Positions 1 through 18,749 of a stretch of 19,413 nt of DNA are shown here, piece by piece. The stretch is from contig CBFFRQ010000178.1 of assembly GCA_965644315.1 (NCBI GenBank), positions 1-19,413 on the forward strand, written 5' to 3'. Within the stretch, counting starts at the first letter, position 1; every line of letters starts with the position of its first letter. Source of the stretch: Caecitellus pseudoparvulus. Its lineage: Eukaryota > Protista > Bigyra: Bicosoecida. A program made the translations under genes and the position numbers. The notes below the pieces were generated by a model. The model saw nothing but the letters and a program-made list of their open reading frames with translations, did not search any database and was not told the origin of the DNA.

Positions 1-615
1 GTCCCATTGAGTGGTTAGGAGGGGTTCGTTTTTGAGCTTGTCAGGAGGGCATGTTGGCGATAGTTGTATGTGATAATGTACTGAGTATAAAATAACGAAT
101 GCATACATTATTTTTGTCAGAGTGTGCTTGAAAGGTTGGGTCTGTGATGCAAACTGGATGCGGAATTTGCTTGCCCACGTTTGTAAAAGGAGGCTGCTGT
201 CTTATGTTCCAGTCTACTTGCGCGTATTCGTACACTTTCGTGATCCAATGCAAATTTTTATGAAGTGTGGGCCGAATTTCGAGGAATCGGGCCGTTTTGG
301 TGATCACCCTCTTTCGATTCGGGTGAGTTGTCTGTCGATTACGAACAGAGGGCCTGCGTCGTCATCGAGGTGCTCACAAACCCGCATTCGACACCGGCGC
401 AACCAGCACTCCAGCCCCCATGTGTCTTTCACAGTGTCGAACTACCGATCAAACGATCAGCGTCCCAGGGTTGCAATTCACAATTTTCACCTCGAAGGCT
501 TGCACTTCCCGCAAGGCGAGTTTCGCGGAAATCGAAATGAGTCTTGGTTGAGACAGGCCGAACAAGGCACTGTGAGAAAAGACTCCCCGTATTGTCTTGC
601 ACAGATCATACAACC

Positions 616-2349
616 ATGTCTGGCATGCAATTCCTGGTTTCCTTTTTACTGTTGCGCCGGCGGCAGCATGTCCGTAGGTTGCAAGCGCTCCAAGCACTTA
701 TTGCCACAGAAGCAGCACTGTTGCTGGCAGTGGTAGCAATGGCCGATGAAGATGGACACGAGCAGGCCGTGCCACTACCGTGCTTCGATGAAGACTGTGC
801 TCTGGAGGAGGGCGTGAGGGCCAGCGCACGTGGCCGCACCAATCCTCTTGCAGGTTTGGCATCCGGTGTGAGGACGTGGGTGGCACGGCAACATGGAGTG
901 CCTCTCGAAGAGCACGAGGTTTGCACAACCCCACATACGGTGTTGCAGTATACTATGAAGCAGTTGTGCTCTGTTGGTGTGAACACTATTTTAGCTCTAT
1001 CGGTGTGGTTCATGAAATCTTCTGCACCAAAACTCTGGTACAGGTGGGTCATGCATTCGATCCTACCCGTGGAAGTAGAGGCCCACGCTGTGGAGCTTGC
1101 AGGTGATGAACCTGCAGAGGAACCAGACTCACAAGAGCACAGGACCTGGCAGAGACAGCTTCGGCGCCACAGGGAAGACTGTCTGCACGAGCACTGCAGT
1201 CGCCTTGGGGCATGCGAGCGTCCCATGGTGCAGCAACAGCCATCAGTGGCAGACTGGTGGGGTGCTGTGGACTCATCATTCTGCGGCCAAGGATGCACTT
1301 TCAGTTGGCTGGAGGCTTGTTGCCTTGGAGTGCATTATATGTGCAAGGGTTTCAACATGAGAGCTGGACAAGAAGCGTTCACTGGGGCATCGAAGTCCAC
1401 ATGCAGTCGAATCCTAAAGGTTTTCTTGCGGTCTATCTCATCCAGCATGTTTGAACAGCAGGTGTACATGCCAGCACCAGATTCTGGGGAGTGGATGGAG
1501 AGTGTACGATTGAACTTTGCCCTGTCAGGCATGCAGCTGCCGTGCGTAGCAGGCAGCGTGGATGATACACATGTGCGTGCTTACATCAGTGAAGATAGTG
1601 GAAAGGGCGTATACATAAACAAGGATGGCGTGGCTTCGGTTAGTGCCCAGTGCATGGTAAGTGGCCACGGACTCTTCTGGCAAGCAGACATTGGGTATGC
1701 TGGTGCCGAAAGCGATCGGGGGAAGCTCATAAGGTCTCCCATGTTTGCGGCAATGGTCGGGAACCCAAGCTTACGTCCTTGTCCACTCCCATATACATTG
1801 GCAGCAGACTCGGGATTTCGTCCGGGGTACACATTCTTACTTCTTCCGTTCGACCAGCGGGACACTGATGTGGTGCAGCCGAATCATTTGGTGACAATTT
1901 TCCACGATGCACTTTTGCACATTCGAGTTAAGGTAGAATGTGCATTTGGAGAGCTCAAGAACAGGTTCCGCATCTTGAACAACACTGCGAATGGAAACCT
2001 TGGGCCAGCAGCAGTTGCACTGCGTCTACGTGTAGCTGTAGCACTGCATAACTTTGTACTGCGAGCTCTGCCATTGCGGGCATCTGTGTGGCATGCCCTT
2101 GATGTGACAGCGCCGGGGACTGTCTGGGGTGACCTGCTGGAAGAAGCAACGGCAAAGGTGGTAGAGGACTTGCTTGAGGCGCAGCCCCCTTCATGGAGTA
2201 TGCCGAGTGCCATGGGATGGAAGACGCAAGTGCTGGAGCTGGCGCTTGGCCAGCTTCCACCCACACCATCTTCAAGTATGCTGGGGTTCAGTATCGCTCC
2301 ATCATGGTGGGCACTGCCCAGTGGTGCCGCGAGAGAGTTGAAGAGCTAG
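616..2349 (+). CDS. PIF/Harbinger-superfamily DDE transposase (HARBI1/DDE_Tnp_4-like); true C-terminus probably continues in another frame to 2444
   Basis: Harbinger motifs in canonical order: HTH-like region (LGVHYMCKG...ASKSTCSRILKVF), VAGSVDDTHV (D at 1561), SVSAQCMV...IGYAGAESD, TLAADSGF (D at 1807), LLLPF, RVKVECAFGELKNRFRIL (E at 1936), VAVALHNF. First in-frame ATG is at 616; the track ORF starts at TTG 544. Confidence 0.92.
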   Translation: MSGMQFLVSFLLLRRRQHVRRLQALQALIATEAALLLAVVAMADEDGHEQAVPLPCFDEDCALEEGVRASARGRTNPLAGLASGVRTWVARQHGVPLEEHEVCTTPHTVLQYTMKQLCSVGVNTILALSVWFMKSSAPKLWYRWVMHSILPVEVEAHAVELAGDEPAEEPDSQEHRTWQRQLRRHREDCLHEHCSRLGACERPMVQQQPSVADWWGAVDSSFCGQGCTFSWLEACCLGVHYMCKGFNMRAGQEAFTGASKSTCSRILKVFLRSISSSMFEQQVYMPAPDSGEWMESVRLNFALSGMQLPCVAGSVDDTHVRAYISEDSGKGVYINKDGVASVSAQCMVSGHGLFWQADIGYAGAESDRGKLIRSPMFAAMVGNPSLRPCPLPYTLAADSGFRPGYTFLLLPFDQRDTDVVQPNHLVTIFHDALLHIRVKVECAFGELKNRFRILNNTANGNLGPAAVALRLRVAVALHNFVLRALPLRASVWHALDVTAPGTVWGDLLEEATAKVVEDLLEAQPPSWSMPSAMGWKTQVLELALGQLPPTPSSSMLGFSIAPSWWALPSGAARELKS

Positions 2350-2464
2350 CCCTTCTGCACCTGCAAGCACCTGAACAGCCTGGGGCTGCCGGCGAAGGTG
2401 ATGAAGGGAGTGACTGGGAAGGTGACTCTGTTGGCAGTCAATAATGCAGTGTGTTGTCTCATGT

Positions 2465-4685
2465 TCATGACTGCATGGGTTGCCCAGCAACACTACGCTT
2501 CTTCAGGGCTGTAACCATTTGAAGTCGGGCGCGTGCGACCTTCAGCTCCTTGTCTGCGTCTGACAGCGGGTGCGGTGGCATGCCACGCAAGGTTGGAGGC
2601 ACACTTCCGCTGTGCAGCTGCTCCAAAACAGTCTGAACCTGCTCTTGCATGCTAAGGTCACCGTCAATGATGCTTAGGTCCAACCACCCCTGCACTCTTG
2701 TAATTACACCTGATATCGCTGCATCTACCGCACGCTCACTATGTGCGGCAGCAGCACCTGGTGCAGGCACCGAAAGCGAAGGTGCGGGCTGCTGCACTTG
2801 CAAGGACTGCTGGAAAAACTGAAGAAGTGAGGCGTCCTGTTGTGCTTGTCGTTCCCGTGCTGCCTCTTCAGCAACCTGTCGTTTCTCCAGCGAATCTGCC
2901 AAACGGGCAACGATGTCACGCATGCCTGCGGCTGGTGGTGACGTGCCAGACCCCAGGCGACCTCCATCCAGGGCTCCAGTTGCTTTTGCAACAGCAGCAA
3001 CACGGCTTCCCGTGCTCGTTCCACTCCCCGCACCTGATAGGTACTCTCCGCCCTGTCGCGGACTTTCAGTGGGCAACGCAGCGGGCCTGCCACTCGCCAA
3101 CAGCGAGGCTACTGTGTGTGATCCTTCAGATCTAGCCTCTGCAAATATCCCGTTGGTGATGTTGCGAGGCACTGAAGACATCGTTGCCTTTGGCCTGGCT
3201 TTGCCTTGGCACACGCTTGCATAATTCATCAGCTCGCCCGGAAGCAGTCCACCGTTCAGGGGTGGATAGCGCAAGTCATCAGTTGGTCCCACAGGCAACC
3301 ACATTTCCTTGTTCGTTACGCTACACCGCAGGCGCTGGAAGCGCAAGCGCGCAGCGGCGCTTGCGTTTCGTGCCCTGCTCCACCCCACCTTCGTGATGTC
3401 CCAACGTGTGTACTTCTTTCCATTTAAATCAAGAGAGGGAGCACCAGGGTGGCTAGGGGCTGTGGGTTCGCTTGCCCCCCCGCTTCCCGTCCTTCTGCCC
3501 TCAGACCCGTTGATGATGTCAACCTGTTTCTTCAACGTTTCGAGGCTGGCCCAAGTACCTGAAGCTGGAACCAGAGCCTCACGAAGGAGGCTTGAAACCA
3601 GGACCAAGCCTGACCACGACAGGAAGGCTTCTTGGGAATCACTACCTGGTGTTGAAACCAACACCATGTACTTTGAGTCGTCTCGCTCCGGCCATGGCCT
3701 TCCTAGCATGTTCGTGTCATGCTCCTCGAAGGCAGTGAGCAGCAACGGCAAGAATTTGTGAGCTAGGCTCTTGCCCACAATGCCACTTCGCATCTTGTTG
3801 CTCCCTTGTGTGGCAAAAGTCCGGAACAGGCTTCTGTCAGAGCCTTCCGGGCATGGCTCACCCGACGAGACAACACGACCCCCAAGAGATGAGTAGTCAA
3901 TGGTACCCTCACGAACACCCAGACGAACGATAGCTCCAGACATTCTCCATGCACTTGCTTTGTTTCCAAAGGCAGCCCAGGTCGACGACGGCATCAAGGT
4001 GGCGAACTCCTTCTTGTCAGGGTGCGTCTGCACCCCATTCTTGGACGGTGTTTGCAACAGAGCTCGATCAGTAGAGGCCCACGGAATTGGGCTCGCTGAG
4101 TCGAGACGCATCAACGCACGGGCAGGGGAAGTGGCAGCTGGTGTCGCGCCGACGGCACCAGCAGCACTCCGTGGTGGGGAAGGGCTGCCAGCTGTCCAGG
4201 ACACACCACCACTCTCCAAGTCAGGACTTGAACTGTCACTCTTGCCCTCATCACCACTCATGTCAACGACCTCGTCTGCGGGCAGAGTCAGGAAGGCGTG
4301 TTTGCGAGAAGCGTTTCGGAGTTTCACACAGCGGAAATGAAAACGAACCGAAAGCTTCCAGTTGTTCCTTAGCGTTTGTCTTCATCCTCCTGGCAATGCT
4401 TGCTGTAAGGGCAGCAATCCGGACTGGTCTGGTAGGCGTTGCGATGGCGGGTGATTCTTGCGCAGCGAGTTCGCTTCCTGGAGGCGTTGCAGGCAGCTCA
4501 AACACCCGTCCTGCTGCCCCGAGCCTCGCGCCCGTCCGCAGTCGGGAAGTCGGTGCGTTACCTTGAAGGAACTGTCGGACCAGTGCATGTGTGTCCGCTT
4601 GCGAGCCTTCAACTGCGGTTCTTTTGCCACTCGTCGGCGCATCTGCCTGAACGCGTGCATTCCGGGGGCGCTTGCGGCCAGACAT
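2465..4685 (-). CDS. Spliced ~715-aa protein, probable Harbinger accessory ORF2 (exons 4685-4349 and 4275-2465)
   Basis: ATG at 4685 in a gccATG context, N-terminal basic NLS-like RKRPR. A 73-nt phase-1 intron (4348-4276; GTTCGT donor, CTGAC branch-like motif, CGCAG acceptor) joins track ORFs 4263..4685 and 2465..4327 in frame (G|AC = Asp). The gene converges tail-to-tail on the transposase and has S/G-rich low complexity plus a coiled-coil segment (LADSLEKRQVAEEAARERQAQQ), as is typical of Harbinger ORF2. A Myb/trihelix domain is not clearly recognisable by eye. Confidence 0.7.
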
Positions 4686-4834
4686 GGCAGCAAATCATTC
4701 CAAGAGTATGCTCACAACTTACTGTGAATAGTTTAAAAGTAGAGTTTGATATCCATATCTGCACTGCTCGCCATGGTACACAAACCACTGCCAGCAAGTG
4801 GCAAATTCCGCATGCTAATAGGCTCGATAAACAA

Positions 4835-4918
4835 CGCTCTGTTGCACACGACAGAGCGGCCGTTCAAGTCTAACATCCTCTGTTAGTGTCAAGGTGACAA
4901 AACATGCTGCCTGCAGCA
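4835..4918. other. Cluster of four near-contiguous short inverted repeats in the divergent intergenic region
   Basis: CGCTCTGT-N8-ACAGAGCG (4835-4858), CTAACA-N5-TGTTAG (4870-4886), TGTCA-N3-TGACA (4887-4899), TGCTG-N4-CAGCA (4905-4918). Confidence 0.6.
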
Positions 4919-4991
4919 CTTTTCCGTGAACTTCAAAAAATGCATTCTCGTTTCACAGATTTTCTCGATTCAGAGGCCTCCGCTGGCCTCA

Positions 4992-6052
4992 ATGAGACAC
5001 GGCCCGGTGGTCACCCAACCACCACCGGCACAAGAACGCCGCCGCTCACTGTTTGACATTGTCATGCAAGCCTCCGATGCTGGTGCCCACATGACAGCAT
5101 CAACTGCATCAGAAGCAGACGCCAGTGTGACAGCAGCACCAGGTGCGCCACTCGGCAAAAGCCTGGCACTGAGACACGACACTCTTGGCATTGAAGCTGC
5201 TTTCGACGCCATCAGCCAAGGCGCCCACCACTCGAGTCTCCCGCCCCCCAAACACAATACTTCGGCACACCCTGCTCCAGAGGTACATGACTCCGTCGAC
5301 TTTCCTTCCCAGCCTGACCTCACATGTTCAGACAAAACTGGGCCGGCGCAGCCACACTGGACACGCCAGATGGATGCCTTGCTCCTTCGTGGGTTGCTGC
5401 AGGGCACACAACCCACATGGACTGGCAGACTTCAAGCCACCTGCACAGCCCTGGCGCCACATGGGGTCTCTTCCGTCGAGCAGGTCGAGCACCGTTGGAA
5501 CCTCCAATACGCGGCGAAGGTTAGACAACCACTGCCCTGACATCCCGAAATCACGCAAACCTGCAGGTGGACATGGCTGGGACCCCACCCCAGGGCCCCG
5601 CTCTCGCTGGCCTCGCCGCCGGTGCAGCCGTGGCCACGGGAGTGCACCTGGCGAGCCAAGCTGCCGGCACTGTTGCTGGCGCGGGCCTCAGCCTGGCATC
5701 CACCGCCATGACGGAGGGCACACGGGCCGTGGGCGGTGACGTGGCCGCGGCAGCTGTGGCAGGTGTGTGTGGTGCTGGGTGTGCCCTGGCCGCGACAGCC
5801 GCCAGCACCACCGGCACAGTGGCCAGTGCGGCGGCTGGCGCAGTCACGTCCGTGGCGGTGACGGCTGTAGGCTCCGCGGCGCTGCATGGTGTGCGTGCGG
5901 CGAGCGCGGGTGTGGTGGGTGGTCAGGGCGGGCATGGGGATGTGTGGAGGTGCGGGGAGGGGGGTCCGCTGTGGTGTGAGGTGGATGATGGGTATGTGTG
6001 TGTGTCTCGTCCGGGTGGGTGTGTGAGGGGCAGGAGTGGTGGAGAGGGATGA
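4992..6052 (+). CDS. Spliced ~337-aa protein: Myb/SANT-like repeat followed by an Ala/Gly/Thr-rich hydrophobic domain (exons 4992-5519 and 5567-6052)
   Basis: HWTRQMDALLLRG...TWT...SSVEQVEHRWNL has Myb-like W...W...RW spacing. A 47-nt phase-0 intron (5520-5566; AAG|GTTAGA...CTGAC...CTGCAG|GTG) fuses track ORFs 4926..5540 and 5567..6052 in frame. The start codon is uncertain (4992 or a later ATG). Confidence 0.65.
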
Positions 6053-6078
6053 GGTGGTGTGCATTGTGGGCATAGTGG

Positions 6079-8361
6079 TCATGCGTGTAGGGAGCGGATG
6101 TGTCTCTTGAGGCTACCAGCCTCGCAAAACGCCTTGTCACAGTGTGGGCAGTGGTGATCTCGGGCACCCTCGTGTACGGTGCGGATGTGGGTTTTGAGGT
6201 AGCCAGCCGTGCCAAATGTCTTGTCACAGTGTGGGCAGTGGTGGTCTCGGGCGCCTTCATGCACTGTGCAGATGTGCCGCTTGAGATTGCCAGCCGTGCC
6301 AAACGCCTTGCCACAGTGTGGGCAGTGGTGGTCTCGTGCACCTTCGTGCACAGTGCGGATATGCTTCGTGAGGCTGCCAGCCTGGCCAAACGCCTTGTCA
6401 CAGTGTGGGCAGTGGTGGTCTCGTGCACCCTCGTGCACGGTGCGGATGTGGACCTTGAGATTGCCAGCGTGCCCGAAGGCCTTGTCACAGTGTGGGCAGT
6501 GGTGATCCTTGGCGCCTTGGTGCACGGTGCGGATGTGAGCCTTGAGATAACCAGCCTCGCCGAATGCCTCGTCACAGTGTGGGCAGTGGTGATCTCTGGC
6601 ACCTTCGTGCACGGCGCGGATGTGGACCTTCAGGTTGTCAGCCCTCCCGAATACCTTGCCACAGTGTGGACAGTGGTGGTGTCTGGCACCTTCGTGCACG
6701 GTGCGGATGTGCTTCTTCAGATTGCCAGCCTGTCCAAATGCCTTGTCACAGTGTGGGCAGTAGTGATCCTTCGCCCCTTCATGCACAGTGCGGATATGCT
6801 TCGTGAGGCTGCCAGCCGTGCAAAACGCCTTGTCACAGTGTGGGCAGTGGTGGTCTCGTGCACCCTCGTGCACGGCGCGGATGTGGACCTTGAGGTCGCC
6901 AGCCTTGCCAAACGCCTTGTCACAGTGTGGGCAGTGGTGGTCTCGTGCACCCTCGTGCACAGTGCGGATGTGGACCTTGAGATTGCCAGCCGTGCCAAAC
7001 GCCTTGTCACAGTGTGGGCAGTGGTGGTCTCGTGCACCCTCGTGCACGGTGCGGATGTGGACCTTGAGGCTGCCAGCCTCGCCAAACGCCTTGTCACAGT
7101 GTGGACAGTGGTGGTCTCGCGCACCCTCGTGCACAGTGCGGATGTGTCTCTTGAGGTCGCCAGCCGTGCAAAACGCCTTGTCACAGTGTGGGCAGTGGTG
7201 GTCTCGTGCGCCCTCGTGCACGGTGCGGATGTGGACCTTGAGGTCGCCAGCCGTGCCAAACGCCTTGTCACAGTGCGGACAGTGGTGATCCTTGGCGCCT
7301 TGATGCACGGTGCGGATGTGGACCTTGAGGCTGCCAGCCTCGCCAAACGCCTTGCCACAGTGTGGGCAGTGGTGGTCTCGTGCACCTTCATGCACGGTGC
7401 GGACATGCCGCTTGAGTTGCGCAGCTCCACTGAAGCTCTTCCCACACACAATGCACACCACACGACCCCCAGCACCTGCCCCCCCATGACACTCACGCCT
7501 GTGCTCCTCCACAGCGCCCCACGACCCCAACACCACATCGCACAGCATGCACCGAGGCACGCCTTGCACACGCGCTCCTGCGCCTCGCCCCACATCTGCC
7601 CTCGCCGCCCCAGCCATCTCACCCTCGCCCACGCCCTCGCTGTCGCCCTCGCCACGCGGCATGCTCGTTCCCACATCGCCCAGGGCGTCGCCCCCGTGCC
7701 CACTGCCGTCACGGGTGCCGCTGCTCACCTCCTCACATGACACCGTGCTGTAGCTGCTGTCGCTGCCGTCAGTGCCGTCACTGTCCCACTCGCTGTCACT
7801 GCTGTGCCTCCCGCCATCATCATCGCCGCTGCACTCCTTGGCCCCACCCACACCCACACTCCCTCTTGCTCCCCACTCCCCACAGCTGCTCGACCCCCCA
7901 CTGCTCGTCACCGCCAACCCGCCACAACTCGCTCCGCCACACCACTCACCTTCGCTCACGCCCACCTTCCACAGAGCCATGTTCGACACCGTCCCGGCAT
8001 GCCACTGGGCAGAACATGACGGCAGCTCACCCTGCAGTGCCGCGAAGCCCGCGCGCGTCACGCCCTCCAACCGCCCCACCTGCGCCGCTGACTCTCCACA
8101 CACCTCGCCACCACGCCCTGCGCCCACGCACTGACCGTCGCCACACAACGCGCCCCCACTACACCCCGCCACCACACCCGGCGCCTCGCCACCACACGCT
8201 GCGCCACACTTCCTCTTGCAGGGACTGGCCTGGCCTCCCGCCAACCTGCGCTTCGCGCCCCCCACGGCGCTCACCCTGCCCGCTTGCGTTGCAGTCACTG
8301 CAGCGTGCCTCAAACTGCGCCGGCACGCCACGCCGGGCTGCCTCGTGCCCACACAGCTCAT
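6079..8361 (-). CDS. C2H2 zinc-finger array protein (~760 aa; 2 divergent plus 15 tandem fingers) with Gly/Cys-rich and acidic Ser-rich N-terminus
   Basis: 15 x CPHCxKxFxxAGxLxxHIRxVH with EGARDHH-type linkers, preceded by CMLC...HRRECH and CIVC...HVRTVH. Start placed at 8361 (MSCVGT) because this Met is conserved in the paralog (19346) and the longer track ORF begins inside the retrotransposon A1 repeat. Confidence 0.93.
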   Translation of the reverse strand: MSCVGTRQPGVACRRSLRHAAVTATQAGRVSAVGGAKRRLAGGQASPCKRKCGAACGGEAPGVVAGCSGGALCGDGQCVGAGRGGEVCGESAAQVGRLEGVTRAGFAALQGELPSCSAQWHAGTVSNMALWKVGVSEGEWCGGASCGGLAVTSSGGSSSCGEWGARGSVGVGGAKECSGDDDGGRHSSDSEWDSDGTDGSDSSYSTVSCEEVSSGTRDGSGHGGDALGDVGTSMPRGEGDSEGVGEGEMAGAARADVGRGAGARVQGVPRCMLCDVVLGSWGAVEEHRRECHGGAGAGGRVVCIVCGKSFSGAAQLKRHVRTVHEGARDHHCPHCGKAFGEAGSLKVHIRTVHQGAKDHHCPHCDKAFGTAGDLKVHIRTVHEGARDHHCPHCDKAFCTAGDLKRHIRTVHEGARDHHCPHCDKAFGEAGSLKVHIRTVHEGARDHHCPHCDKAFGTAGNLKVHIRTVHEGARDHHCPHCDKAFGKAGDLKVHIRAVHEGARDHHCPHCDKAFCTAGSLTKHIRTVHEGAKDHYCPHCDKAFGQAGNLKKHIRTVHEGARHHHCPHCGKVFGRADNLKVHIRAVHEGARDHHCPHCDEAFGEAGYLKAHIRTVHQGAKDHHCPHCDKAFGHAGNLKVHIRTVHEGARDHHCPHCDKAFGQAGSLTKHIRTVHEGARDHHCPHCGKAFGTAGNLKRHICTVHEGARDHHCPHCDKTFGTAGYLKTHIRTVHEGARDHHCPHCDKAFCEAGSLKRHIRSLHA
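6082..7390. repeat. 87-bp coding minisatellite, 15 units (zinc-finger array)
   Basis: The motif TTG(T/C)CACAGTGTGGGCAGTGGTG recurs with period 87 (e.g. 6134, 6221, 6308, 6395); units are near-identical at the DNA level. Confidence 0.96.
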
Positions 8362-8542
8362 GGTGGGAGTGGGGGGGGGGAGGGCAGCAATGTGCAGTGT
8401 GATTCGTGTGCAGTGTGTGCAGTGTGTGGTTGGGAAGTGGTGCGCGGGGGGAAGTGTGCTGGGTTGTGTGGCAGGAGAGACTCGCCGGCGAGCTGCTCGG
8501 GCTGCATGCTCGACTCCACACGTCCATGCCCAGCCCCAAGCC

Positions 8543-8721
8543 CCGAGGTTGCCGGCACCCCAGCCGGCAACCATGTTTCCCGGCAGGAGGGGCGGCGGGC
8601 AGTCCCACGCTAGTGGCACAATTGTCCCCCGCCGCCCCAACGCAGAGTAGACGACGGCAGGACCGGGCATGACAAAACCAGTCATTAGCCGGCCTCGTCA
8701 CTCTCTTTCCTTTTTTTTCGA
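8543..8721 (+). repeat. Split direct repeat A1
   Basis: CCGAGGTTGCCGGC...CTCTCTTTCC(T)8CGA, identical to 14027-14214 except in the terminal pyrimidine tract. Confidence 0.96.
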
Positions 8722-8722
8722 G

Positions 8723-10804
8723 ATGGCATCGGATGATCCAGCTTCCAGCGACACGGAGGGCGGAAGCTGGGAGGACATCCACGACAAAATGATGTCTGTC
8801 AACTCCGCCAAGCAAGCCAAGGCGCTCATAACGGAGCAGGAGTTCGAGTACTGGCTGAAGTGGGCGGATTCTGAGGATTTTGGTAAGATGGAGGCCGCTT
8901 GGCGCCTCCGGGAGGTGCCCGAGGGATTCCGGGCAGATCGCATGCGATCCCTCATTGCGGGCAGAGCTTTCCGCCTCCCCGCTGACGGTGCCCCTCATCG
9001 CGCAGGCGGCTCACCACGGGGGCACGGCACGAAGCGAACCCGTCCGCGCGGTGCGAGCAGTGGCACGCCCTACGGCCCGCACCTACCCCCGCGCCCGACC
9101 CAGCCGGACGCAGTCGCAGGCGACCTCCCGCAAGATCCCGCCACAGTGCTTACGTGGTTCCTGCAGAGGGGAGCGACGGTGCCGAGCGAGGACGTCGCCG
9201 TGCAGCTGCAGTTCTACGTGGGCTTGGCAACGGAGGAGACATCGCCGTACGCCCTCTCCGCTTGGCCTCCACGGCGCTTCGCCGCATGGTGCAGACTCAA
9301 CGGTATTCCCCCCGACCTCACCCCCGACGACATCGTGATGCATTTGCAGCGGGTCCTGGAGGCCGCGCTGGCGGGCGACGACGACTTTGGCGACGACGAT
9401 GCCGGCGCCCCGTTCTTTCCCGTTTTCCCGGGCACCACACCGGATGCCGCCCGGTTACAGCCCCGTGCGGCGGCCCCGGGTCACCCCCGGCCTCCAAGAG
9501 GCACAGGGCGGCCTATAGCCCGCAGCCCCCCTCCCCCGTGGGGCGGCGGAGCCTCGCCGGCAGTCCACCCCGAAGGCGGGTCGGCTGTTTTCGGTCACAT
9601 GGGGGAGAACAGCGGTCGGTCGTCGCCAGCCGACGAGGTACTGGTCACTGTAGGCGCGCTGCGGGTCATTGGGCCGACCGCACACCCCTCGTCGGCGGTG
9701 GCCCGGGACCGCCTGTCAGCCTTGGGGGCAGTTTTCGCTGCGGGGACCACAGACGCCTTGACCACGGTGGCTGTCGAGATGGCTGAGGCTGCTGCACGAG
9801 AGGTGCCCGCAGCAACGGGCCCAGTGCCGTCAGGTACGTTCCTGTCCCGCCAGCTCCCCCCCCACTCGCCCCGCGTGCCCGCTCCCGGCGACCCGTCCTG
9901 GCTCACAGCCCCCGGCGATGAGGTAGCCCCGCCGTCCGCGTCGGTCATGATGGACGACGCTATGGACGTAGTGACTGCTGTACGCCTGGTGCAAGGGAGG
10001 GTGGAAGTTACAGTTGACCCAACCCATCTAGTGGCAGTAACTGGGGCGGGTGCCCTGTCGGCATGCCACATGCTGGGCAACCGTGGGGGCGCTTGGTGGC
10101 TTGCTGCGATGACCAGGGACTTGCTGACGGCGCCTTCCGACGACCTCCACCGCTCCCTCCGAGCGTTCTGGTGGAAGTGGGCGTCCGAGGTGCCCGCCCT
10201 GGCAGACCAGCGGGGCCTGTGCCGAGCCATGGCGTGCGCACTCCTGATCACAATCGCAGTGCGGGCCGTGGCGCAGACCGCCGCTGCGTTGCCCGAAGGC
10301 CAGCGCAGGCGATGGGCCCAGCTGACGTGGGCCTCCTGGGTGGCCACGTTCCGCACTAACGCCACCATTGTCATGATGGCGTCGGCGACGGGGCAAGCAC
10401 TGGTGGCCAGCTCGCTGGCGCGCGAGGCATGGGCGGCCGGGGCCGCCGCCACACCGATGCCAGGTGCGGGGGGCGGCCCGGCGCAAACCCCCGCTCGTGG
10501 CCCTCCCGCGGGGCTGTACCGGCAGGACGACCCGAGCACATTCGTGTGGTGCCCCGGGTGCGTCGGATCCGACCGGCGGCGCCGGTCGCTGGCATCCTGC
10601 CCACGCCTGGCCCAGCATGTGGCCCACCTGCGCCGGACCCACACAGTCGGAGGTAAGCCCGCAGAACTTACCCAGGCGCAGGCAGTGGCCATGCTGGTGC
10701 GCCAGTGGGAGCGGAAGGTGGCATCCAAGGGACGTGACTTCCAGCGGCGCATGCAGCCCCGCGCTGTCACCACGGCCATGGTGGAGGCAGCTCTCAGCCT
10801 CTAG
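8723..10804 (+). CDS. Retrotransposon ORF1 (Gag-like by position), with a C-terminal CxxC...H...H motif
   Basis: ATG lies immediately after A1; long Pro/Ala-rich ORF preceding RT; motif CPGC...RLAQHVAHLRRTH near the C-terminus. The Gag assignment is positional only. Confidence 0.8.
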   Translation: MASDDPASSDTEGGSWEDIHDKMMSVNSAKQAKALITEQEFEYWLKWADSEDFGKMEAAWRLREVPEGFRADRMRSLIAGRAFRLPADGAPHRAGGSPRGHGTKRTRPRGASSGTPYGPHLPPRPTQPDAVAGDLPQDPATVLTWFLQRGATVPSEDVAVQLQFYVGLATEETSPYALSAWPPRRFAAWCRLNGIPPDLTPDDIVMHLQRVLEAALAGDDDFGDDDAGAPFFPVFPGTTPDAARLQPRAAAPGHPRPPRGTGRPIARSPPPPWGGGASPAVHPEGGSAVFGHMGENSGRSSPADEVLVTVGALRVIGPTAHPSSAVARDRLSALGAVFAAGTTDALTTVAVEMAEAAAREVPAATGPVPSGTFLSRQLPPHSPRVPAPGDPSWLTAPGDEVAPPSASVMMDDAMDVVTAVRLVQGRVEVTVDPTHLVAVTGAGALSACHMLGNRGGAWWLAAMTRDLLTAPSDDLHRSLRAFWWKWASEVPALADQRGLCRAMACALLITIAVRAVAQTAAALPEGQRRRWAQLTWASWVATFRTNATIVMMASATGQALVASSLAREAWAAGAAATPMPGAGGGPAQTPARGPPAGLYRQDDPSTFVWCPGCVGSDRRRRSLASCPRLAQHVAHLRRTHTVGGKPAELTQAQAVAMLVRQWERKVASKGRDFQRRMQPRAVTTAMVEAALSL

Positions 10805-13023
10805 GAGGTGGGCCGGAGCGCGGTGGTGAGAGCGACCACGGGGTACCGGGCCGTGCCCGTGGAGTGGAGGGCTGCCGCCCCGCTCTCGACAGACCACCGC
10901 GCCATGGCCGTGCTCATCGAATCAATGGTCCAGCAGCTGCATGGGGACCGTTGTTGGACTCCACCGGGGCTCTTCGAGGACATCTTGCGTGGGGGCTTGG
11001 ACTGGGGCCCCCACCCCGTGGTCTCATACTGGGGTTGCCAGGAGGCCCACGCTGACGTGTGTCCCGCATGCGGCGAGACCACTTCCAGATTACGGCAGCT
11101 TGAGCGGTGCGCAGCCATGCGACTGCTCACCGTGGTCACGCTGCGCGGGTGGGACCCCGCTTGGCTGCTGTTCCGCCGCCCCCCGGCAGCGGCATCCCCG
11201 TCCTCGGCATACGTGCTGCAGCCGCACGACGAGCGGGCGGGGGCAGCGGCCTATGACGCCTTCGCGGCTGCGCGCGTGCTGCAGCCGGTCACCCCCCAGC
11301 AGCTGCAGCAGCACCGAAAGATGGGGGGGCCAGCCGCTTCTGCCTTCGTTGTCACGACATGGGCCCCCCAGCCGGGCGTCAGCGACGAAGCTCTGCGACA
11401 GTGGGCTGCTGCGAACCCAGGCGAGGCGGTGCAGGCCGCCAGCTCTTCCCGCGCGCCCGCCCGCCCGAGCCGCCTGTTCCGGGCCAAGCAGCGGGTGGTG
11501 TACGATCTGGCAGCCGTCAACCAGGCCTCAGTGAGCCCCCCATTCCACTACCCCACGCTGGAGAGCTGGGCGCTGCGCCTCCCGCCGAACTCGGACTGTG
11601 TTGTCCTGGACGTGGAAGCAGGGTACACGGCCATCCCCATCGCTCCGTCGGGCGCCGGACTGTTCACCATGCTCGCCCAGGGCAGGCCAGCCTTCCGCAT
11701 GCTTCGGATGGCCTTCGGGTACAGCCCGGCCGGGGCCATTTTCTGCTTTTTTTCTGGACTTCTGGGCGCCAAGATCGAAGCGGCGTTCCCAGCAGGGCAT
11801 GTGGTTGTGTACGTAGACGACGTCGGGCTTGGGGGAGCTACGTTGGGGCCACGGCCATCGATCGTGCCCAAGATAACTCAACTGTTCGAGGACGTGGGCT
11901 TCCGGGTGTCGCGCAAGAAGACGCAAGGGCCACAGCGCGTCGTTCAGTACTTGGGGATGGTGGTCAGGTGTGCCCCGTGTGGGGTGTACCTTGAGTGTCC
12001 TCAAGCCAAACGAACTCAGCTGCGGTGGCAGCTGGCCGCGGTCCTTAATCGCCTCGGCGCTTGCTCCACCATCCCCAAGCGCGTTTTCGCCGCGGTCACA
12101 GGGCGCTTGCACGGCCTGTCGGCCGTGGTGCCCCACGCAAAACAAACGCTGTCGCTCTTGTACGACACCATGCGCACACACAAGTACCGCGTCGGCCCCC
12201 CGGCGCTCTCGTGCCTGTCCCCCCGGCGTCGCACGGGGCCCTGCGGACCCTCCTTGAGGCCCTCGGTGGGCCGTTATCGACGGGCCCGATGCGCCCGCTC
12301 TCCCCACTGTCAAGCAGGTGGCGCGCCGCCCTCTTTGGCTCGTGCGACGCGTCGGGGGAAGGCGGGCTGGGGGCAACAGTGTCGAGGTGGGCAGGGCCAG
12401 GAGAACGCACAGACTCCGCTTGGTACGCGTCCATGCGCATCCCCGGCACAGCCCCGGGCGAGGAGCTCGTGGGAGCCTCCACGATGCTGGAGCTGTACGC
12501 AATCGCCTTGGCTATGGCAATGGCGCGGCATGTTTTTCCCGAGCCGGGGCCGCTGCTGCTATGCCTAGCTGCGGACAGCCAGGCAGCGGTGGCGCTGGCG
12601 CGACGAGGGTACAGCAAGCACAGCCGTGAACTCACGCGCGTCTGCGGGGTCCTCGAGCGGGTTTCCCGCGTTTTGGACGTCCACTTGGCGCCTCGGTGGA
12701 TCCCGAGGAGCCTGAATTGGCGGGCGGACGCCCTCAGCCACCCCGAAAGGGTGGATAGCAGCACACCGGCAGCGCTCGGCCTCCCGCCAGGGCAACCAGC
12801 CGAGCTGGAGGTATCAGCAGGGGGAAGCAGCGCCGCTGAGCGGTGGCATGATGTGTCCCTAGACGTAGGGCCGTCGGGAAAGGCCGGGGCGGGCACCGCG
12901 TGGATTCACTCAGCTCAACTCTCCGTCGCCCTGCACAGACACACTCTGGATAAGGAAGCAGACCTTCTGGCAGATGATCAGGGCCATCCCCGCGTCCCCG
13001 ATCAGCAGGATTCACCAACATAG
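10805..13023 (+). CDS. Reverse transcriptase-RNase H (DIRS/Ngaro-type), split by an apparent 1-nt frameshift at ~12196-12201
   Basis: RT motifs: KQRVVYDL..VN, VVLDVEAGYTAIPI, RMAFGYSPAG, YVDD (11810-11821), VSRKKT, YLG. RNase H motifs in the -1 frame: GSCDASG, STMLELYAI, AADSQAAV, WIPRSLNWRADALS. Confidence 0.93.
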
Positions 13024-13873
13024 GCTGGCAAAGGGGACGGTGGTCAAGTACGTTCGCGCGGTTGCTGGCCTGATCAGGGCCGCTCCAGCACCCCGGGACA
13101 GGGCGCGGACCATGGTGGGCATCTTAACGGGCGGCGTGGCCGCAGGCAGATGGGCCCCCCATCGGGCGAAGCAGATCCTGGCGCAATGGGTCGGTGGTTT
13201 TAGGTATCTGGGCCTGCCAATCCCGTCGCTAGCCCCGCTGGGGCTCACAGTCGGCAGCATCTGCCGGGCAATCCGCCGGCTCCACCGAGGGAGAGGGGAG
13301 CAACACCGCCGCCCTATCAGCAAAGAACAAGTCATGGAGGCCATGAAGCGGGCATGGGACGGGCCACACCTCGGGAGGCATGCCCCAACTGCCGCCGCAG
13401 CTATCTACATCGGCTTTCATGGCATGTGCAGGCCGGGAGAGCTCCGGGGCCTGCGATGGGAGGAGTTGCACTTCGGGCGGGCGGGCCCCCTGCAGTGGGT
13501 GGAGGCCAGGGTCACGGATAAAACGCACCTGAGTGCAAACCGCCACATCCAGGTGGTGCGCCAGGCCGAGTGGGCGGGGGCCTTCGACCGCCTCCGGGAG
13601 CAGGCCCGGGACAAGCGGGGAAGCCTGCTCCCAAGGTGGGCGTGGCTCAGCCTGCAAGGCATCCTGAAGGCTGTAGCGGGCGTGTCCTTGGCCCACCTGA
13701 GACCCGGGGGCAATATGTTCTGGACAGGCCGGGCCCCCGACGTCTTGGTGGAGCACGCGGCGGGCTGGGCGGCTGGCTCCCCCACCCGGGCACGATACTA
13801 CACCCAGGGGGGGGGGGAGGGGGCGAGGCTGTGGCACGAGGCCATGACACCCAGGGGAGGAAGCAAGCATTGA
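12974..13873 (+). CDS. Tyrosine recombinase (DIRS/Ngaro YR integrase), 299 aa
   Basis: N-terminal LAKGTVVKY, then GFHGMCRPGEL (catalytic R), DKT (K), AHLRPGG (H-x-R variant of HxxR), AGW, RYY (catalytic Y). Overlaps the end of the RNase H frame by 50 nt. Confidence 0.92.
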   Translation: MIRAIPASPISRIHQHRLAKGTVVKYVRAVAGLIRAAPAPRDRARTMVGILTGGVAAGRWAPHRAKQILAQWVGGFRYLGLPIPSLAPLGLTVGSICRAIRRLHRGRGEQHRRPISKEQVMEAMKRAWDGPHLGRHAPTAAAAIYIGFHGMCRPGELRGLRWEELHFGRAGPLQWVEARVTDKTHLSANRHIQVVRQAEWAGAFDRLREQARDKRGSLLPRWAWLSLQGILKAVAGVSLAHLRPGGNMFWTGRAPDVLVEHAAGWAAGSPTRARYYTQGGGEGARLWHEAMTPRGGSKH

Positions 13874-13878
13874 AAAGT

Positions 13879-14028
13879 ATTGGCGGGTGCCGCAAGGAGG
13901 CGTCCCCTCCCCCAAGAGATGCAGCGAGCCCTGGTGGCCGCTGGCATAGAGGGGAGGGGACGGCCTCGAGGCGGGCCCAGTTCAATGCATTTCGATTGCC
14001 ACGCACAACGCACCAACACGAGGGAACC
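13879..14028 (+). repeat. Split direct repeat B1
   Basis: ATTGGCGGGTGCC...ACACGAGGGAACC, matching 14214-14366 apart from two homopolymer lengths. Confidence 0.96.
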
Positions 14029-14214
14029 GAGGTTGCCGGCACCCCAGCCGGCAACCATGTTTCCCGGCAGGAGGGGCGGCGGGCAGTCCCACGCTAGTGG
14101 CACAATTGTCCCCCGCCGCCCCAACGCAGAGTAGACGACGGCAGGACCGGGCATGACAAAACCAGTCATTAGCCGGCCTCGTCACTCTCTTTCCTTTTTT
14201 TTTCTTTTTCTCGA
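14027..14214 (+). repeat. Split direct repeat A2
   Basis: Copy of 8543-8721. Confidence 0.96.
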
Positions 14215-14366
14215 TTGGCGGGTGCCGCAAGGAGGCGTCCCCTCCCCCAAGAGATGCAGCGAGCCCTGGTGGCCGCTGGCATAGAGGGGGGAGGGGACGG
14301 CCTCGAGGCGGGCCCAGTTCAATGCATTTCGATTGCCACGCACAACGCACCAACACGAGGGAAACC
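14214..14366 (+). repeat. Split direct repeat B2 (right terminus of the element)
   Basis: Copy of 13879-14028 (G6 vs G4, A3 vs A2). Confidence 0.96.
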
Positions 14367-15112: not shown

Positions 15113-18100
15113 TCATGCGTGTAGGGTGCGGATGTGTCTCTTGAGGTCGCCAGCTCTTCCAAATGTCTTGCCACAGTGCGGGCAGTGGTGATCTTTGACG
15201 CCTTCATGCACGGTGCGGATGTGTCTTTTGAGGTGGCCAGCTTTTCCAAATGTCTTGCCACAGTGCGGACAGTGGTGATCCTTGGCGCCTTGATGCACGG
15301 TGCGGATGTGGACCTTGAGATTGCCAGCCTGGCCGAATGTCTTGTCACAGTGTGGGCAGTGGTGGTCTCGTGCACCTTCATGCACGGTGCGGACATGCCG
15401 CTTGAGTTGCGCAGCTCCACTGAAGCTCTTCCCACACACAATGCACACCACACGACCCCCAGCACCTGCCCCCCCATGACACTCACGCCTGTGCTCCTCC
15501 ACAGCGCCCCACGACCCCAACACCACATCGCACAGCATGCACCGAGGCACGCCTTGCACACGCGCTCCTGCGCCTCGCCCCACATCTGCCCTCGCCGCCC
15601 CAGCCATCTCACCCTCGCCCACGCCCTCGCTGTCGCCCTCGCCACGCGGCATGCTCGTTCCCACATCGCCCAGGGCGTCGCCCCCGTGCCCACTGTCGCC
15701 ACGGCTGTCACTGCTCGCCTCCTCACATGACACCGTGCTGTAGCTGCTGTCGCTGCCACTGCTGTCACTGTCCCACTCGCTGCCACTGCTGTGGCTCCTG
15801 CCACCATCATCGCCCCTGCACTCCTGGTCTTGACTCTCGTCCACGTTAGTACACATGCCAGGCTCCCTAACGCTGCCACCCTCCACGTCATCCCCGTTAT
15901 CACTACTTCCATCGCCAAAGGACGACCTCGCCTGCACACTTCCACTCACAGAGTTTTCCACCCGCCCCACATCGACACGTTCACCCGCATCCGCCTCCCA
16001 CTCCTCGGTGCTGCTGGACCCGCCGCTGCTCGTCCCTCCATGGGCCAAGCTGGGTTGCTGCCCGGGCTCCGTCCATGACCCCGAGCACCAACGCTCCATC
16101 ACTGACTGCCGCTCACGCCACAGCCGTGCATGGGCCTCTATTGCAGGTGAGCCCGGTACACGTTCGCCCGCCACACTTCCATTTCTCAAAATTGAGTGTC
16201 GCAAAGGATGCACGGCACCTGAAGATGAGCTCTCACCCTGCAAGGACAAGTCTGTGCACCAACTGTGTGTCGCAGAGAAGCGCAGTGGCAGTCCGGGTCG
16301 GCACTGAAGTGCATGAAGCACTCCGTGATCCTTGACATGATCTTGAACGGCAGATGTCTTCGGGCTGAACAGAGCAAGTCGAGACATAGAGAGAGCAAGA
16401 GATGGCACGCTTCCACCACTGCCTGCACTCGGTAGCCGTGACCATGGCCCAACCGTGAGACCCCCACTTGACGAAGGAGCAGAGTTCCCGAACCCAAAGA
16501 GTTCAGCCGGCATCCTTGCCTCCATGAATCCCAAATCACCACTGTCCCCCTCTTCACGCAATAGATCCAAGGCGGCTCGCTGGGCAGAATACACCACTGG
16601 TCCAACACTGCCTTGCTTGCCAGCATCAAGTGCATCTGTCAGACCCTCAGTCACTGACCCATTCGTGCACGCATACTGGACAGCAAGCGTCTTGCGAGCT
16701 TCCCTCCTCTCAGTCCGCCGGTATAAGCGAGCGCCCTCTTCACCCACCGCTCGAGTGTACGCCTCCATCACACTCTCAACACCCTCTAGCATGCCCTTCA
16801 CCCACGCCAACCACCAACCACATGCATCCGCCACGCTCATACTGCCGCCGCTAGCCCCATCATCACCCACCACCTCACTCCCACCGCGCTGCAACGCATC
16901 CCTCACACTCACGTGAAACGGTGCTTCCACACTCACAGCACTGCTCGTACCACCCCCGCCACGCTCACACCGACAATCACACCCCAGCGGCGGGATGGGG
17001 TATGGCACTGCCGCCTTCCCCACACCACCCGCCCCCGCCGGCCACACCACCGGCACCCACTGCCCACTGAGTTCCTGCAGGTCCAGGCCCAGGCTTCGCT
17101 TGCACGACTCGGACACCCGCTGTCCCGTCCCAGACGCCACGCGCAGCAGCCACGCCTCCTCGTTCATGGTCGCCGGGTGCATGAAGTGCCCTCTGACGCC
17201 CACCTCCTCCGCCCCGTGCAGCCACGCCGTCGTCTGATCTCCACAGCACCACACCAGCCAATCACCCACCTGCACATGGTGATTGGAAACAGCAGCCCAT
17301 GGCACCATGTGTCCCGTCGTTACCACGGAGATGCCTGAGGACACGTTAGACCGACGGAACACTCCCTCGCCAGGGTAGAGTGCCTCCATATATTCCTGAA
17401 CACCCTCGTCGCTCACTGACTCGTGCAGCACGTGCACCACGCCCGCACTCCGCATTTGCTGGGCTGAGTGCTTGTCAAAATCTGCCTGCACACACCGCAA
17501 GTGGAACTGCACAATGCGCAAGTGCCAGTTCATGATGCTGACCATGCAGGCTGGCAGGCCGCCGCCGCCGCCTGCGTCCAACCCTGCCCCAGCAGCCGTT
17601 GCCGACCCCAGCTCATACGCACCACCCCCCACGCTGCAGCACCAGGCAAAGGCACACCCACTCCATGCCGCCGGACGATGCACAACCCGCCCCCCTGCCT
17701 TGCCCAGTGCAGCAACACCCGCTCGCCCCTCCACTGTCATCCACGACACCACACGCAGGCGCACATCCTCCGGCACTGATGCGTCACACACCCCCTCCGC
17801 ACACTCCCGCTCCGCCATACTGCACATGCCAGGCTGCATACCCGAGAGCTCAAGCACATGTGCCGGGCTCATGACGACGCCAAAGATCGCCATGAACGCC
17901 TGGGCGGCCATGACACTGTCCGCCACACTCTTCACGCCCCACGCCTCTCGCTCACGCTCCGCAGCCCAGGCCTCCTTCTCCACCTGCGCCGACACTTGCG
18001 GCATCACATCCTCGTACAACCCATGCTCCGAGTACGGGTACACCTGCGCACACACGCCATGCCGACACCCTTGCCAGAACACGCAACGCAGCCGCCTCAG

Positions 18101-18529
18101 CCGCTCACTCACCTTCCGACGCCGGGCCTGCCGCCACGCCAGGTAGTCGTACGCATTCTCCTCTGCCAGGCAGTGATACCGTCGCTGCAAACAGCTCAGA
18201 CATGAACATTTGCCCGCTTCTGCCGCCGGCACACACCTTTTGCCGTGGTACCCAGTCCCGTGCCCGTGCTTATCCTCACCTGCCCGACTCTCGCTCACCA
18301 GGCGTTCCAAGTCTCGAGGGCGGAAGGCCCGCTCACCGTACACAGCCGGGTCCAGGTGAGGCAGCAGCCCGGCCCTCTCTGTCGCCTCCATGTGCGCCAC
18401 CAGTGCCCCTGCCTTGGCCACACCCTTGCAGAAGGCGTACGGTTCCACGTACGCCGAGCACTCACGCAGGCCTGCCAAGGCATCACTGTACTGCGGCGGC
18501 AGTGCATCACTCCCACCCTCCACCGCCAT
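15113..18529 (-). CDS. Large protein with a degenerate JmjC-like domain, acidic Ser-rich linker and C-terminal C2H2 fingers (2 divergent plus 3 tandem)
   Basis: Open frame 19063-15113; ATG 18529 (MAVEGG) is a plausible start unless a 5' exon is spliced on. The fingers are unambiguous. JmjC resemblance: RPAAWSGCAFAWCCS vs KDM4-type PYLYFGMWKTTFAWHTE, and GDWLVWCCGDQTTAWLHG vs GEFMITFPYGYHAGFNHG (same spacing). Confidence 0.8.
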   Translation of the reverse strand: MAVEGGSDALPPQYSDALAGLRECSAYVEPYAFCKGVAKAGALVAHMEATERAGLLPHLDPAVYGERAFRPRDLERLVSESRAGEDKHGHGTGYHGKRCVPAAEAGKCSCLSCLQRRYHCLAEENAYDYLAWRQARRRKVSERLRRLRCVFWQGCRHGVCAQVYPYSEHGLYEDVMPQVSAQVEKEAWAAEREREAWGVKSVADSVMAAQAFMAIFGVVMSPAHVLELSGMQPGMCSMAERECAEGVCDASVPEDVRLRVVSWMTVEGRAGVAALGKAGGRVVHRPAAWSGCAFAWCCSVGGGAYELGSATAAGAGLDAGGGGGLPACMVSIMNWHLRIVQFHLRCVQADFDKHSAQQMRSAGVVHVLHESVSDEGVQEYMEALYPGEGVFRRSNVSSGISVVTTGHMVPWAAVSNHHVQVGDWLVWCCGDQTTAWLHGAEEVGVRGHFMHPATMNEEAWLLRVASGTGQRVSESCKRSLGLDLQELSGQWVPVVWPAGAGGVGKAAVPYPIPPLGCDCRCERGGGGTSSAVSVEAPFHVSVRDALQRGGSEVVGDDGASGGSMSVADACGWWLAWVKGMLEGVESVMEAYTRAVGEEGARLYRRTERREARKTLAVQYACTNGSVTEGLTDALDAGKQGSVGPVVYSAQRAALDLLREEGDSGDLGFMEARMPAELFGFGNSAPSSSGGLTVGPWSRLPSAGSGGSVPSLALSMSRLALFSPKTSAVQDHVKDHGVLHALQCRPGLPLRFSATHSWCTDLSLQGESSSSGAVHPLRHSILRNGSVAGERVPGSPAIEAHARLWRERQSVMERWCSGSWTEPGQQPSLAHGGTSSGGSSSTEEWEADAGERVDVGRVENSVSGSVQARSSFGDGSSDNGDDVEGGSVREPGMCTNVDESQDQECRGDDGGRSHSSGSEWDSDSSGSDSSYSTVSCEEASSDSRGDSGHGGDALGDVGTSMPRGEGDSEGVGEGEMAGAARADVGRGAGARVQGVPRCMLCDVVLGSWGAVEEHRRECHGGAGAGGRVVCIVCGKSFSGAAQLKRHVRTVHEGARDHHCPHCDKTFGQAGNLKVHIRTVHQGAKDHHCPHCGKTFGKAGHLKRHIRTVHEGVKDHHCPHCGKTFGRAGDLKRHIRTLHA

Positions 18530-18749
18530 CTTCACGAAGATCAACACCGTCGCACAGTGCAGCGCAGCATGTGGGGACAGAGCAGGGTGCGCCAGGCTTG
18601 CCAATACTCGCCGCTTCTGCGACGGGCGGGTGAGCAAGCGAGGAGAGGCGTGGCAAAGCTGCCGCCCGGTACGTGGCTGATGCGCCCACGCACGAGGATC
18701 CATGACCACGATATGCTTCCTGTCGCTAAGCACATCTGCAGCAGCCGCT

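Follow-up and report, generated by a model that had tools for sequence, protein, structure and literature searches.

We analyzed the whole 19,413-nucleotide contig CBFFRQ010000178.1 (19.4 kb; hereafter the window) from the genome assembly of the bicosoecid flagellate Caecitellus pseudoparvulus (GCA_965644315.1; 30.6 Mb in 215 contigs), which carries on its minus strand a gene encoding an extended series of C2H2-type zinc fingers, here named gene A. This gene is intact and is one of a family of 14 that probably encodes nuclear sequence-specific DNA-binding proteins. The family would have diversified by birth and death, i.e., by gene duplication, by gain, loss and exchange of finger units, and by substitution of the DNA-contacting residues within a functional alphabet. 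The features of gene A are as follows.

8362-8542, minus strand: 5' non-coding stretch of gene A, with indels that are not multiples of 3; an insertion of a Ngaro-type retrotransposon cuts off the next tandem unit here
6079-8361, minus strand: zinc finger gene A, probable coding sequence of 760 codons (ATG 8361-8359, stop codon 6081-6079)
8209-8253, minus strand: KRR-x10-KRK motif, residues 37-51, conserved in all 14 copies
7717-7830, minus strand: acidic Ser/Asp-rich stretch (SSDSEWDSD...VSCEEV), common to the paralogs, its length varying by whole codons
7486-7551, minus strand: atypical first finger (CMLC...H-x4-H) followed by a Gly/Ala spacer, nearly invariant across paralogs
7390-7455, minus strand: 'CIVC' leader finger, of which every paralog has one
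6085-7368, minus strand: 15 finger units of the 'CPHC' type, 87 bp or 29 amino acids each, the last without linker
5568-6078, minus strand: conserved 3' flank and probable 3' untranslated region of gene A, 88-96% identical among paralogs

The zinc finger array of gene A

Tandem Repeats Finder reported two arrays, one at 6094-7403 with a period of 87, 15.1 copies, a score of 1665 and 84% matches, the other with 3.1 copies at 15125-15393. With a regular-expression scan for C-x2-C-x12-H-x4-H, gene A was resolved into 17 fingers, namely the atypical first finger, the CIVC leader finger and 15 standard fingers of the CPHC type. The CPHC units start at 7368 and follow each other at a spacing of exactly 87 bp; the last one (6150-6085) is succeeded by an alanine codon and the stop codon (6079-6081). 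The original prediction, made from the letters of the sequence, had listed 15 units of 87 bp, and these were recovered in register from 7368 to 6085 on the minus strand. Its reading of the contact residues at helix positions -1, +3 and +6 was likewise correct for all 15 units (from N- to C-terminus ESV, TDV, TDR, ESV, TNV, KDV, TSK, QNK, RNV, EYA, HNV, QSK, TNR, TYT, ESR), as was that of positions +1 and +2, where 14 units have AG and the remaining one AD, and of the triplets QNV, KHR and RDR in the second array of the window. The unit of 29 amino acids with H-x4-H spacing and an EGARDHH linker was also found as described, and Pfam showed neither a KRAB nor a SET domain.

The zf-C2H2 model of Pfam (PF00096) matched gene A in 16 stretches with an E-value of 7e-80 and a score of 259.4 bits (cut-off 25.2). 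The linker E-G-A-R/K-D-H-H keeps the length of the TGEKP linker (7 residues) and its G and K/R positions, but not T, E and P, and the canonical TGEKP linker was absent from the units of the gene A family. Six-frame scanning of the regions fetched for the 14 genes yielded 134 standard units, in which both histidines and the first cysteine are invariant and the second cysteine is present in 133, the exception being a TGA codon. The hydrophobic core is similarly well kept, with Phe in 133 and Leu in 133 of the 134 units. Among solved structures, the closest to the array were those of DNA-bound ZNF568, CTCF, Aart, ZNF410, ZBTB17 and PRDM9, which aligned with one gap per finger. This likeness to DNA-bound structures, together with the types of residues present at -1, +3 and +6, suggests that the array binds DNA in a sequence-specific manner.

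The finger framework is conserved as protein and diverse as DNA

The framework codons of array A showed a non-synonymous diversity of 0.054 and a synonymous diversity of 0.377, and for the 26 framework codons of all 134 units an omega (ratio of the non-synonymous to the synonymous rate) of 0.17 was obtained with an IQ-TREE codon tree. Outside the contact codons, the nucleotide distance between units was 0.148 within arrays and 0.160 between arrays, a gap of 7.5% (permutation p = 0.0002). The uniform framework is hence the result of purifying selection on the protein and not of concerted evolution of the DNA. The 'almost invariant framework' that had been predicted is therefore real for the amino acids but not for the DNA, as framework synonymous sites differ by 38% between units.

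In PRDM9, most variation between units consists of non-synonymous changes at -1, 3 and 6 (Buard et al., 2014, PMC3890296). In the 134 units, contact codons hold only 37% of the nucleotide differences in the finger core. Considering this value, the synonymous framework diversity of 0.38 and the distances of 0.148 versus 0.160, the family does not have the properties of a homogenised minisatellite of the PRDM9 type, and the notion of a scaffold homogenised by concerted evolution was not supported.

Contact codons change at about the silent-site rate within a narrow alphabet

The three contact codons of array A had a non-synonymous diversity of 0.53 and a synonymous diversity of 0.55. When contact and framework partitions were each run on the fixed IQ-TREE tree, the approximate omega of the contact codons was 1.38 (F1X4) or 1.03 (F3X4); twice the log-likelihood difference to a model with omega = 1 was 3.2 and 0.07, respectively, and neither value is significant. 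As a second approach, units were paired by the similarity of their neighbouring units, which avoids selection bias. For these neighbour-defined pairs, the proportion of non-synonymous differences in contacts relative to that of synonymous differences in the framework was 1.0-1.27, and the corresponding ratio within the framework was 0.16. Nearest-neighbour pairs picked on framework similarity gave contact-to-framework ratios of 1.8-3.8; they were discarded, because selecting for low framework divergence biases the ratio.

The contacts thus evolve at about ten times the rate of the remaining protein, which is roughly the silent-site rate and not demonstrably above it. The proposed diversification at contacts is borne out relative to the framework (non-synonymous diversity 0.53 versus 0.054), but not relative to the synonymous rate, since the omega values of 1.38 and 1.03 are not significantly above 1 and the pairs gave about 1.0-1.3. 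Per-codon diversity and dN/dS, named in the original prediction as a check, accordingly separate the framework (omega 0.17) from the contacts (1.03-1.38).

Despite this rate the set of residues in use is small. Positions -1, +3 and +6 contain 10 (six of which account for 96% of the units), 6 and 6 types of residues, respectively, compared to about 19 expected for unconstrained codons. The alphabets are essentially T/E/Q/R/H/K at -1, S/N/H/D/Y/T at +3 and T/R/V/K/A/I at +6, and they are combined to 70 distinct triplets in the 134 units. The narrowness of the alphabet indicates that the contacts are not drifting freely.

Arrays gain, lose and exchange units

For 37 of the 134 units the nearest neighbour lies in the same array, compared to 8% expected. 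Pairs with identical or nearly identical frameworks are found two or four units apart (A3/A5, A4/A6, units 2/6 of paralog C185a, units 9/11 of paralog C208), and terminal units form a type of their own. Paralogs also have a block in common that is out of register: units 6-15 of array A are collinear with units 2-11 of paralog C215b. Within this block, despite a framework divergence of up to 10%, five of the ten contact triplets match exactly and one more has a single residue changed. The closest pair of genes in the family, paralog B of the window and its twin on contig C185, differ by 11.7% in their standard fingers and by 2.7% in the adjacent N-terminal block, which indicates exchange of fingers with other family members. 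We conclude that the arrays turn over by unit duplication, change of length and exchange of blocks. The idea of a recombining, multi-copy family in a microbial eukaryote was thereby supported: the number of fingers varies, units have been duplicated recently, and the arrays have exchanged sequence.

These data also bear on the possibility that the family is an analogue of PRDM9, i.e., a specifier of recombination hotspots encoded by a minisatellite in concerted evolution, with positive selection at the contacts. Both systems have a C2H2 array encoded by tandem repeats, variation focused on -1, +3 and +6 and a variable number of units, and PRDM9-DNA complexes were among the structure matches. 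The protist family, in contrast, has no PR/SET, KRAB or SSXRD domain (the N-terminal block of paralog B was scanned to E<=5) and consists of 14 paralogs instead of a single gene. Outside the contacts, its units are 84% and not nearly 100% alike; synonymous differences are abundant (framework synonymous diversity 0.38), only 37% of the differences lie in contacts, and homogenisation within arrays is only 7.5%. Moreover, collinear units of different paralogs often retain the same contact triplet, as in the block described above, where half of the triplets are identical despite the framework divergence. An analogue of PRDM9 is therefore extremely unlikely.

The paralog family and its genomic setting

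DNA and protein searches of the assembly detected the same gene on eight contigs. The 14 genes encode 3, 5, 5, 7, 9, 12, 13, 13, 14, 14, 16, 17, 17 and 17 fingers, are 80-92% identical, and lie mostly on small transposon-rich contigs. Most of them are part of head-to-tail tandem units of about 3 kb. Only one other, weak locus for a polyzinc-finger protein was detected in the genome. No close homologue was found among 5.8 billion proteins, and no orthologue was found outside this genome.

The copy on contig C57 is flanked by host genes, namely an IQ-motif gene, a gene for an NDUFAF7-type methyltransferase, whose best-matching named relatives come from oomycetes, and an FGGY kinase gene. The GC content at third codon positions is 0.71 in the family, similar to that of the host genes beside the C57 copy. 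A 3.4-kb contig assigned to Symbiodinium sp. KB8 in NCBI encodes a protein (P0243, cluster of P0121) that is 98% identical to the NDUFAF7 homologue of this genome; probably an algal culture was contaminated with this flagellate.

Fourteen copies with conserved 5' and 3' flanks, dispersed over eight mostly small and transposon-rich contigs, would also be expected if the 3-kb unit were cargo of a mobile element and its copy number the result of transposition and not of host gene duplication. However, the copies follow one another directly, head to tail, with the repeat unit running smoothly across the junctions. Among the dispersed copies (C57, C38, C47), the point at which homology stops varies, and the unit has neither terminal inverted or direct repeats nor a transposase or reverse transcriptase inside, while its codon composition is host-like. 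After comparison of junctions and flanks, the reading of the 3-kb unit as a transposon was rejected, and we regard amplification as mobile cargo as very unlikely. From the tandem junctions, the unequal ends of homology, the lack of terminal repeats, the host-gene neighbours and the host-like third-position GC content we read this as a host gene family and not a transposon.

We also considered whether the array could be an artefact of assembly or a decaying pseudogene, since the window is a small, repeat-rich contig and the sequences available from public runs are about 100 nucleotides long, none of them spanning the array. The units are, however, about 16% different and hence resolvable, and every 100-bp bin of a 2,975-nucleotide query is covered by short contigs, which come from three independent samples and in many cases have at least 99% identity; this counts against the assembly artefact named in the original prediction. 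Decay is contradicted by a single stop codon in 134 units, the framework omega of 0.17 and zinc ligands that are otherwise fully kept. Either explanation appears hardly credible.

Gene model and domain layout of gene A

The minus-strand frame of gene A (8685 to 6079) is free of stop codons from 8685 to 6082. An in-frame ATG at 8361 is kept in nine of the ten aligned paralogs, and in the tenth a Ngaro element occupies the site. In the paralog alignment, indels downstream of this ATG are all multiples of 3, whereas those upstream are not. Because of the conserved ATG and these indel lengths, position 8361 was assigned as the start of gene A, giving a probable product of 760 amino acids. An exact-protein look-up of the full 868-amino-acid frame gave no match on record.

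The KRR-x10-KRK motif close to the N-terminus resembles a bipartite nuclear-localisation signal by the textbook consensus. In the first ~85 codons after the ATG (8192-8281, minus strand), nucleotide diversity among paralogs is 0.02-0.05 at all three codon positions, with far less conserved flanks. Besides the motif, this conservation might be due either to gene conversion or to a constraint acting on the nucleic acid. Between the N-terminal segment and the fingers lies a fast-evolving region of low complexity that includes the acidic Ser/Asp stretch. The region of the atypical finger (7561-7472) has a nucleotide diversity of 0.03-0.07 with an excess at third positions. A Pfam scan of gene A revealed no KRAB, SET, ZAD or BTB domain.

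The 3' flank of gene A is adjoined by a Harbinger-type transposase frame with a DDE_Tnp_4 domain (544-2349, plus strand) and a 620-amino-acid frame without a Pfam match (2465-4327, minus strand).

Paralog B carries an additional N-terminal block

The second zinc finger gene of the window has the following layout.

15113-19063, minus strand: paralog B, open frame of 1316 codons comprising an orphan block (19063-15827), an acidic stretch, two leader fingers and three CPHC units (15358-15119) with the contact triplets QNV, KHR and RDR

A 3.2-kb orphan block in frame with the fingers is present in two of the 14 paralogs, in the window at 15827-19063 and in the twin at C185:11016-16064. Between the two, its omega is 0.47 and indels are absent. 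It had no Pfam hit at E<=5 and no Atlas hit, and two weak fragment hits were obtained among 1.84 billion proteins. Modelled by AlphaFold from its single sequence, the block reached a mean pLDDT (the confidence score of the model) of 34, which made the model unusable. In both B and its twin, the conserved exon that contains the ATG and the motif resembling a nuclear-localisation signal lies in a different reading frame from the long open frame, implying an intron or a separate start.

Mobile elements in and beside the family

The following Ngaro insertions were located near family members.

8543-14363, plus strand: young Ngaro-type retrotransposon of 5.8 kb with an RVT_1 domain, between tandem units A and B and outside the gene (filled versus empty site)
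C215:1532-7370, C215:15161-20984 and C215:21479-27287: Ngaro insertions on contig C215
C160:1-5815: Ngaro insertion on contig C160
C185:5832-10796: Ngaro insertion on contig C185

The Ngaro of the window is 99.2-99.8% identical to its copies elsewhere, at least 23 of which are present in the genome, and paralogs without it show the empty site at the position of the A/B junction. At least five independent insertions of this one young element lie in or beside zinc finger family units. Two of them are located directly 5' of the same motif of 14-16 nucleotides. In the C215 array this motif is the part of a finger that encodes D-H-H-C-P-H; in the window (from 14364 onward) it is an inverted version of that stretch, which is found upstream of every gene. 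This may reflect a target preference of Ngaro for finger-coding DNA.

On contig C208, an element with 21-31% GC replaces the N-terminus of a zinc finger gene (locus L063, C208:50000-58519, positions 1-6500). Its products, an rve integrase with a chromodomain and a DUF5906 primase-helicase, make it look like an endogenous virophage of the mavirus/EMALE type. The genome of another flagellate, Cafeteria burkhardae, has been described previously (Hackl et al., 2021, PMC8547959) and is similar to the present one in its high GC content, its marine origin, a Ngaro of about 6 kb with many near-identical copies, and a low-GC element with rve-chromo and DUF5906 domains. Cafeteria serves as a laboratory model for how giant viruses, virophages and retrotransposons interact.

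Recognition rules tie T, V, A or I at +6 and N at +3 to A/T bases, which would be odd targets in a GC-rich host; 61% of the units have one of these four residues at +6 and many have N at +3. We counted this in favour of a defence function similar to that of the KRAB zinc finger proteins (KRAB-ZFPs), in which paralogs would recognise mobile or viral DNA (Ngaro, Harbinger, telomeric long interspersed nuclear elements, endogenous virophages, a giant virus) and the diversification of contacts would reflect an arms race. The mode of evolution, with tandem clusters, variable arrays and diversified contacts, fits such a function, and the family does reside among mobile elements, with the Ngaro insertions in or next to its units and the virophage-like element abutting one copy. 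On the other hand, a repressor domain is lacking and the contact omega is not above 1. The adjacency of transposons may simply reflect repeat-rich, insertion-tolerant regions and fragmentation of the assembly, and the transposons damage zinc finger genes, with no sign of zinc finger genes silencing transposons. Taken together, defence is conceivable but unlikely. Equally doubtful, if not slightly more so, is the specific version in which a reprogrammable finger repertoire without KRAB, SET or a known effector is aimed at the organism's own invaders (Ngaro, endogenous virophages, giant-virus DNA) and the crowding of Ngaro marks an ongoing conflict; a tendency of Ngaro to home onto finger-coding sequence would explain this crowding just as well.

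Proposed mode of diversification

The explanation we consider probable, a nuclear DNA-binding family diversifying by birth and death, would comprise the following steps. In the lineage of this GC-rich marine stramenopile, the family would have grown mainly by tandem duplication of the 3-kb gene unit. Each protein would consist of a conserved N-terminus with a motif resembling a nuclear-localisation signal, a low-complexity and acidic region, the atypical finger, a leader finger and 1-15 standard fingers that end the protein. The fingers would bind double-stranded DNA in the manner of the ZNF568, CTCF and PRDM9 arrays, contacting about three bases each via -1, +3 and +6. Contact codons are replaced at about the synonymous rate within the narrow DNA-recognition alphabet, and with 87-bp units being gained, lost and duplicated and blocks being swapped between paralogs, every paralog carries a different string of specificities.

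Several findings weigh against this explanation. Positive selection was not demonstrated, as the contact omega is not significantly above 1, and tree-based omega is approximate for units that duplicate or recombine, a caveat shared with the PRDM9 study (PMC3890296). Three of the 14 copies are damaged, namely a C215 gene split by Ngaro inside a finger linker, the C208 gene with its N-terminus replaced by the AT-rich element, and C38a with a TGA in the 16th finger, the sole stop codon in the family arrays; individual copies are therefore dispensable. No effector domain was recognised in the proteins of genes A and B by Pfam or by protein searches with the N-terminal block of B. The N-terminal gene model of A rests on the conserved ATG and the indel lengths, and no codon-position signal was present in the paralog diversity between the N-terminal segment and the fingers. 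Finally, the sole RNA run is an environmental metatranscriptome whose contigs of about 100 nucleotides match the array with 90-95% identity and could derive from relatives or from DNA.

Comparison with other zinc finger families

The family most closely parallels the clusters of KRAB-ZFP genes in tetrapods and ZAD-ZNF genes in insects. Common features are tandem, lineage-specific poly-C2H2 genes with finger numbers that vary between paralogs, a framework under purifying selection with diverging -1, +3 and +6 positions, duplication and loss of units, and disruption of some copies. Unlike these clusters, the protist family comprises only 14 genes, has no KRAB (PF01352), ZAD (PF07776), SCAN or BTB domain but an orphan N-terminus, and uses a unit of 29 amino acids with H-x4-H spacing and EGARDHH instead of TGEKP, in a unicellular stramenopile host. 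The predicted resemblance to PRDM9 and young KRAB-ZNF genes thus holds as regards a birth-and-death cluster of the KRAB-ZFP type, but not as regards a minisatellite of the PRDM9 type.

The unit itself was not independently evolved, as had been proposed, since units of 29 amino acids with H-x4-H spacing and an EG.K/R-D..C linker are found in many proteins of other eukaryotes with up to 63% identity. Four unnamed metagenomic proteins from other eukaryotes (P0065, P0009, P0013 and P0026) combine C-x2-C-x12-H-x4-H fingers with a 7-residue linker having G and K/R at positions 2 and 4. The most similar one, P0065 (GC-rich, picoeukaryote-like), shows 63% identity over six fingers and the same 'CPHC...RTVHE' wording. 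All four differ from the protist family in their N- or C-terminal regions, and none has its acidic region, atypical finger or leader finger.

Literature searches found no published report of this zinc finger family. If its proteins were ordinary transcription factors, the family would be a modest addition to the catalogues of protist gene families. C2H2 fingers outside metazoans have been described as few, slow to evolve and limited in diversity and vocabulary (Najafabadi et al., 2017, PMC5588721). A unicellular stramenopile with 134 standard fingers, 70 contact triplets, 14 recently duplicated genes and reshuffled arrays is a counter-example, indicating that 'kaleidoscopic' zinc finger evolution is not restricted to metazoans and needs no partner domain of the KRAB type.

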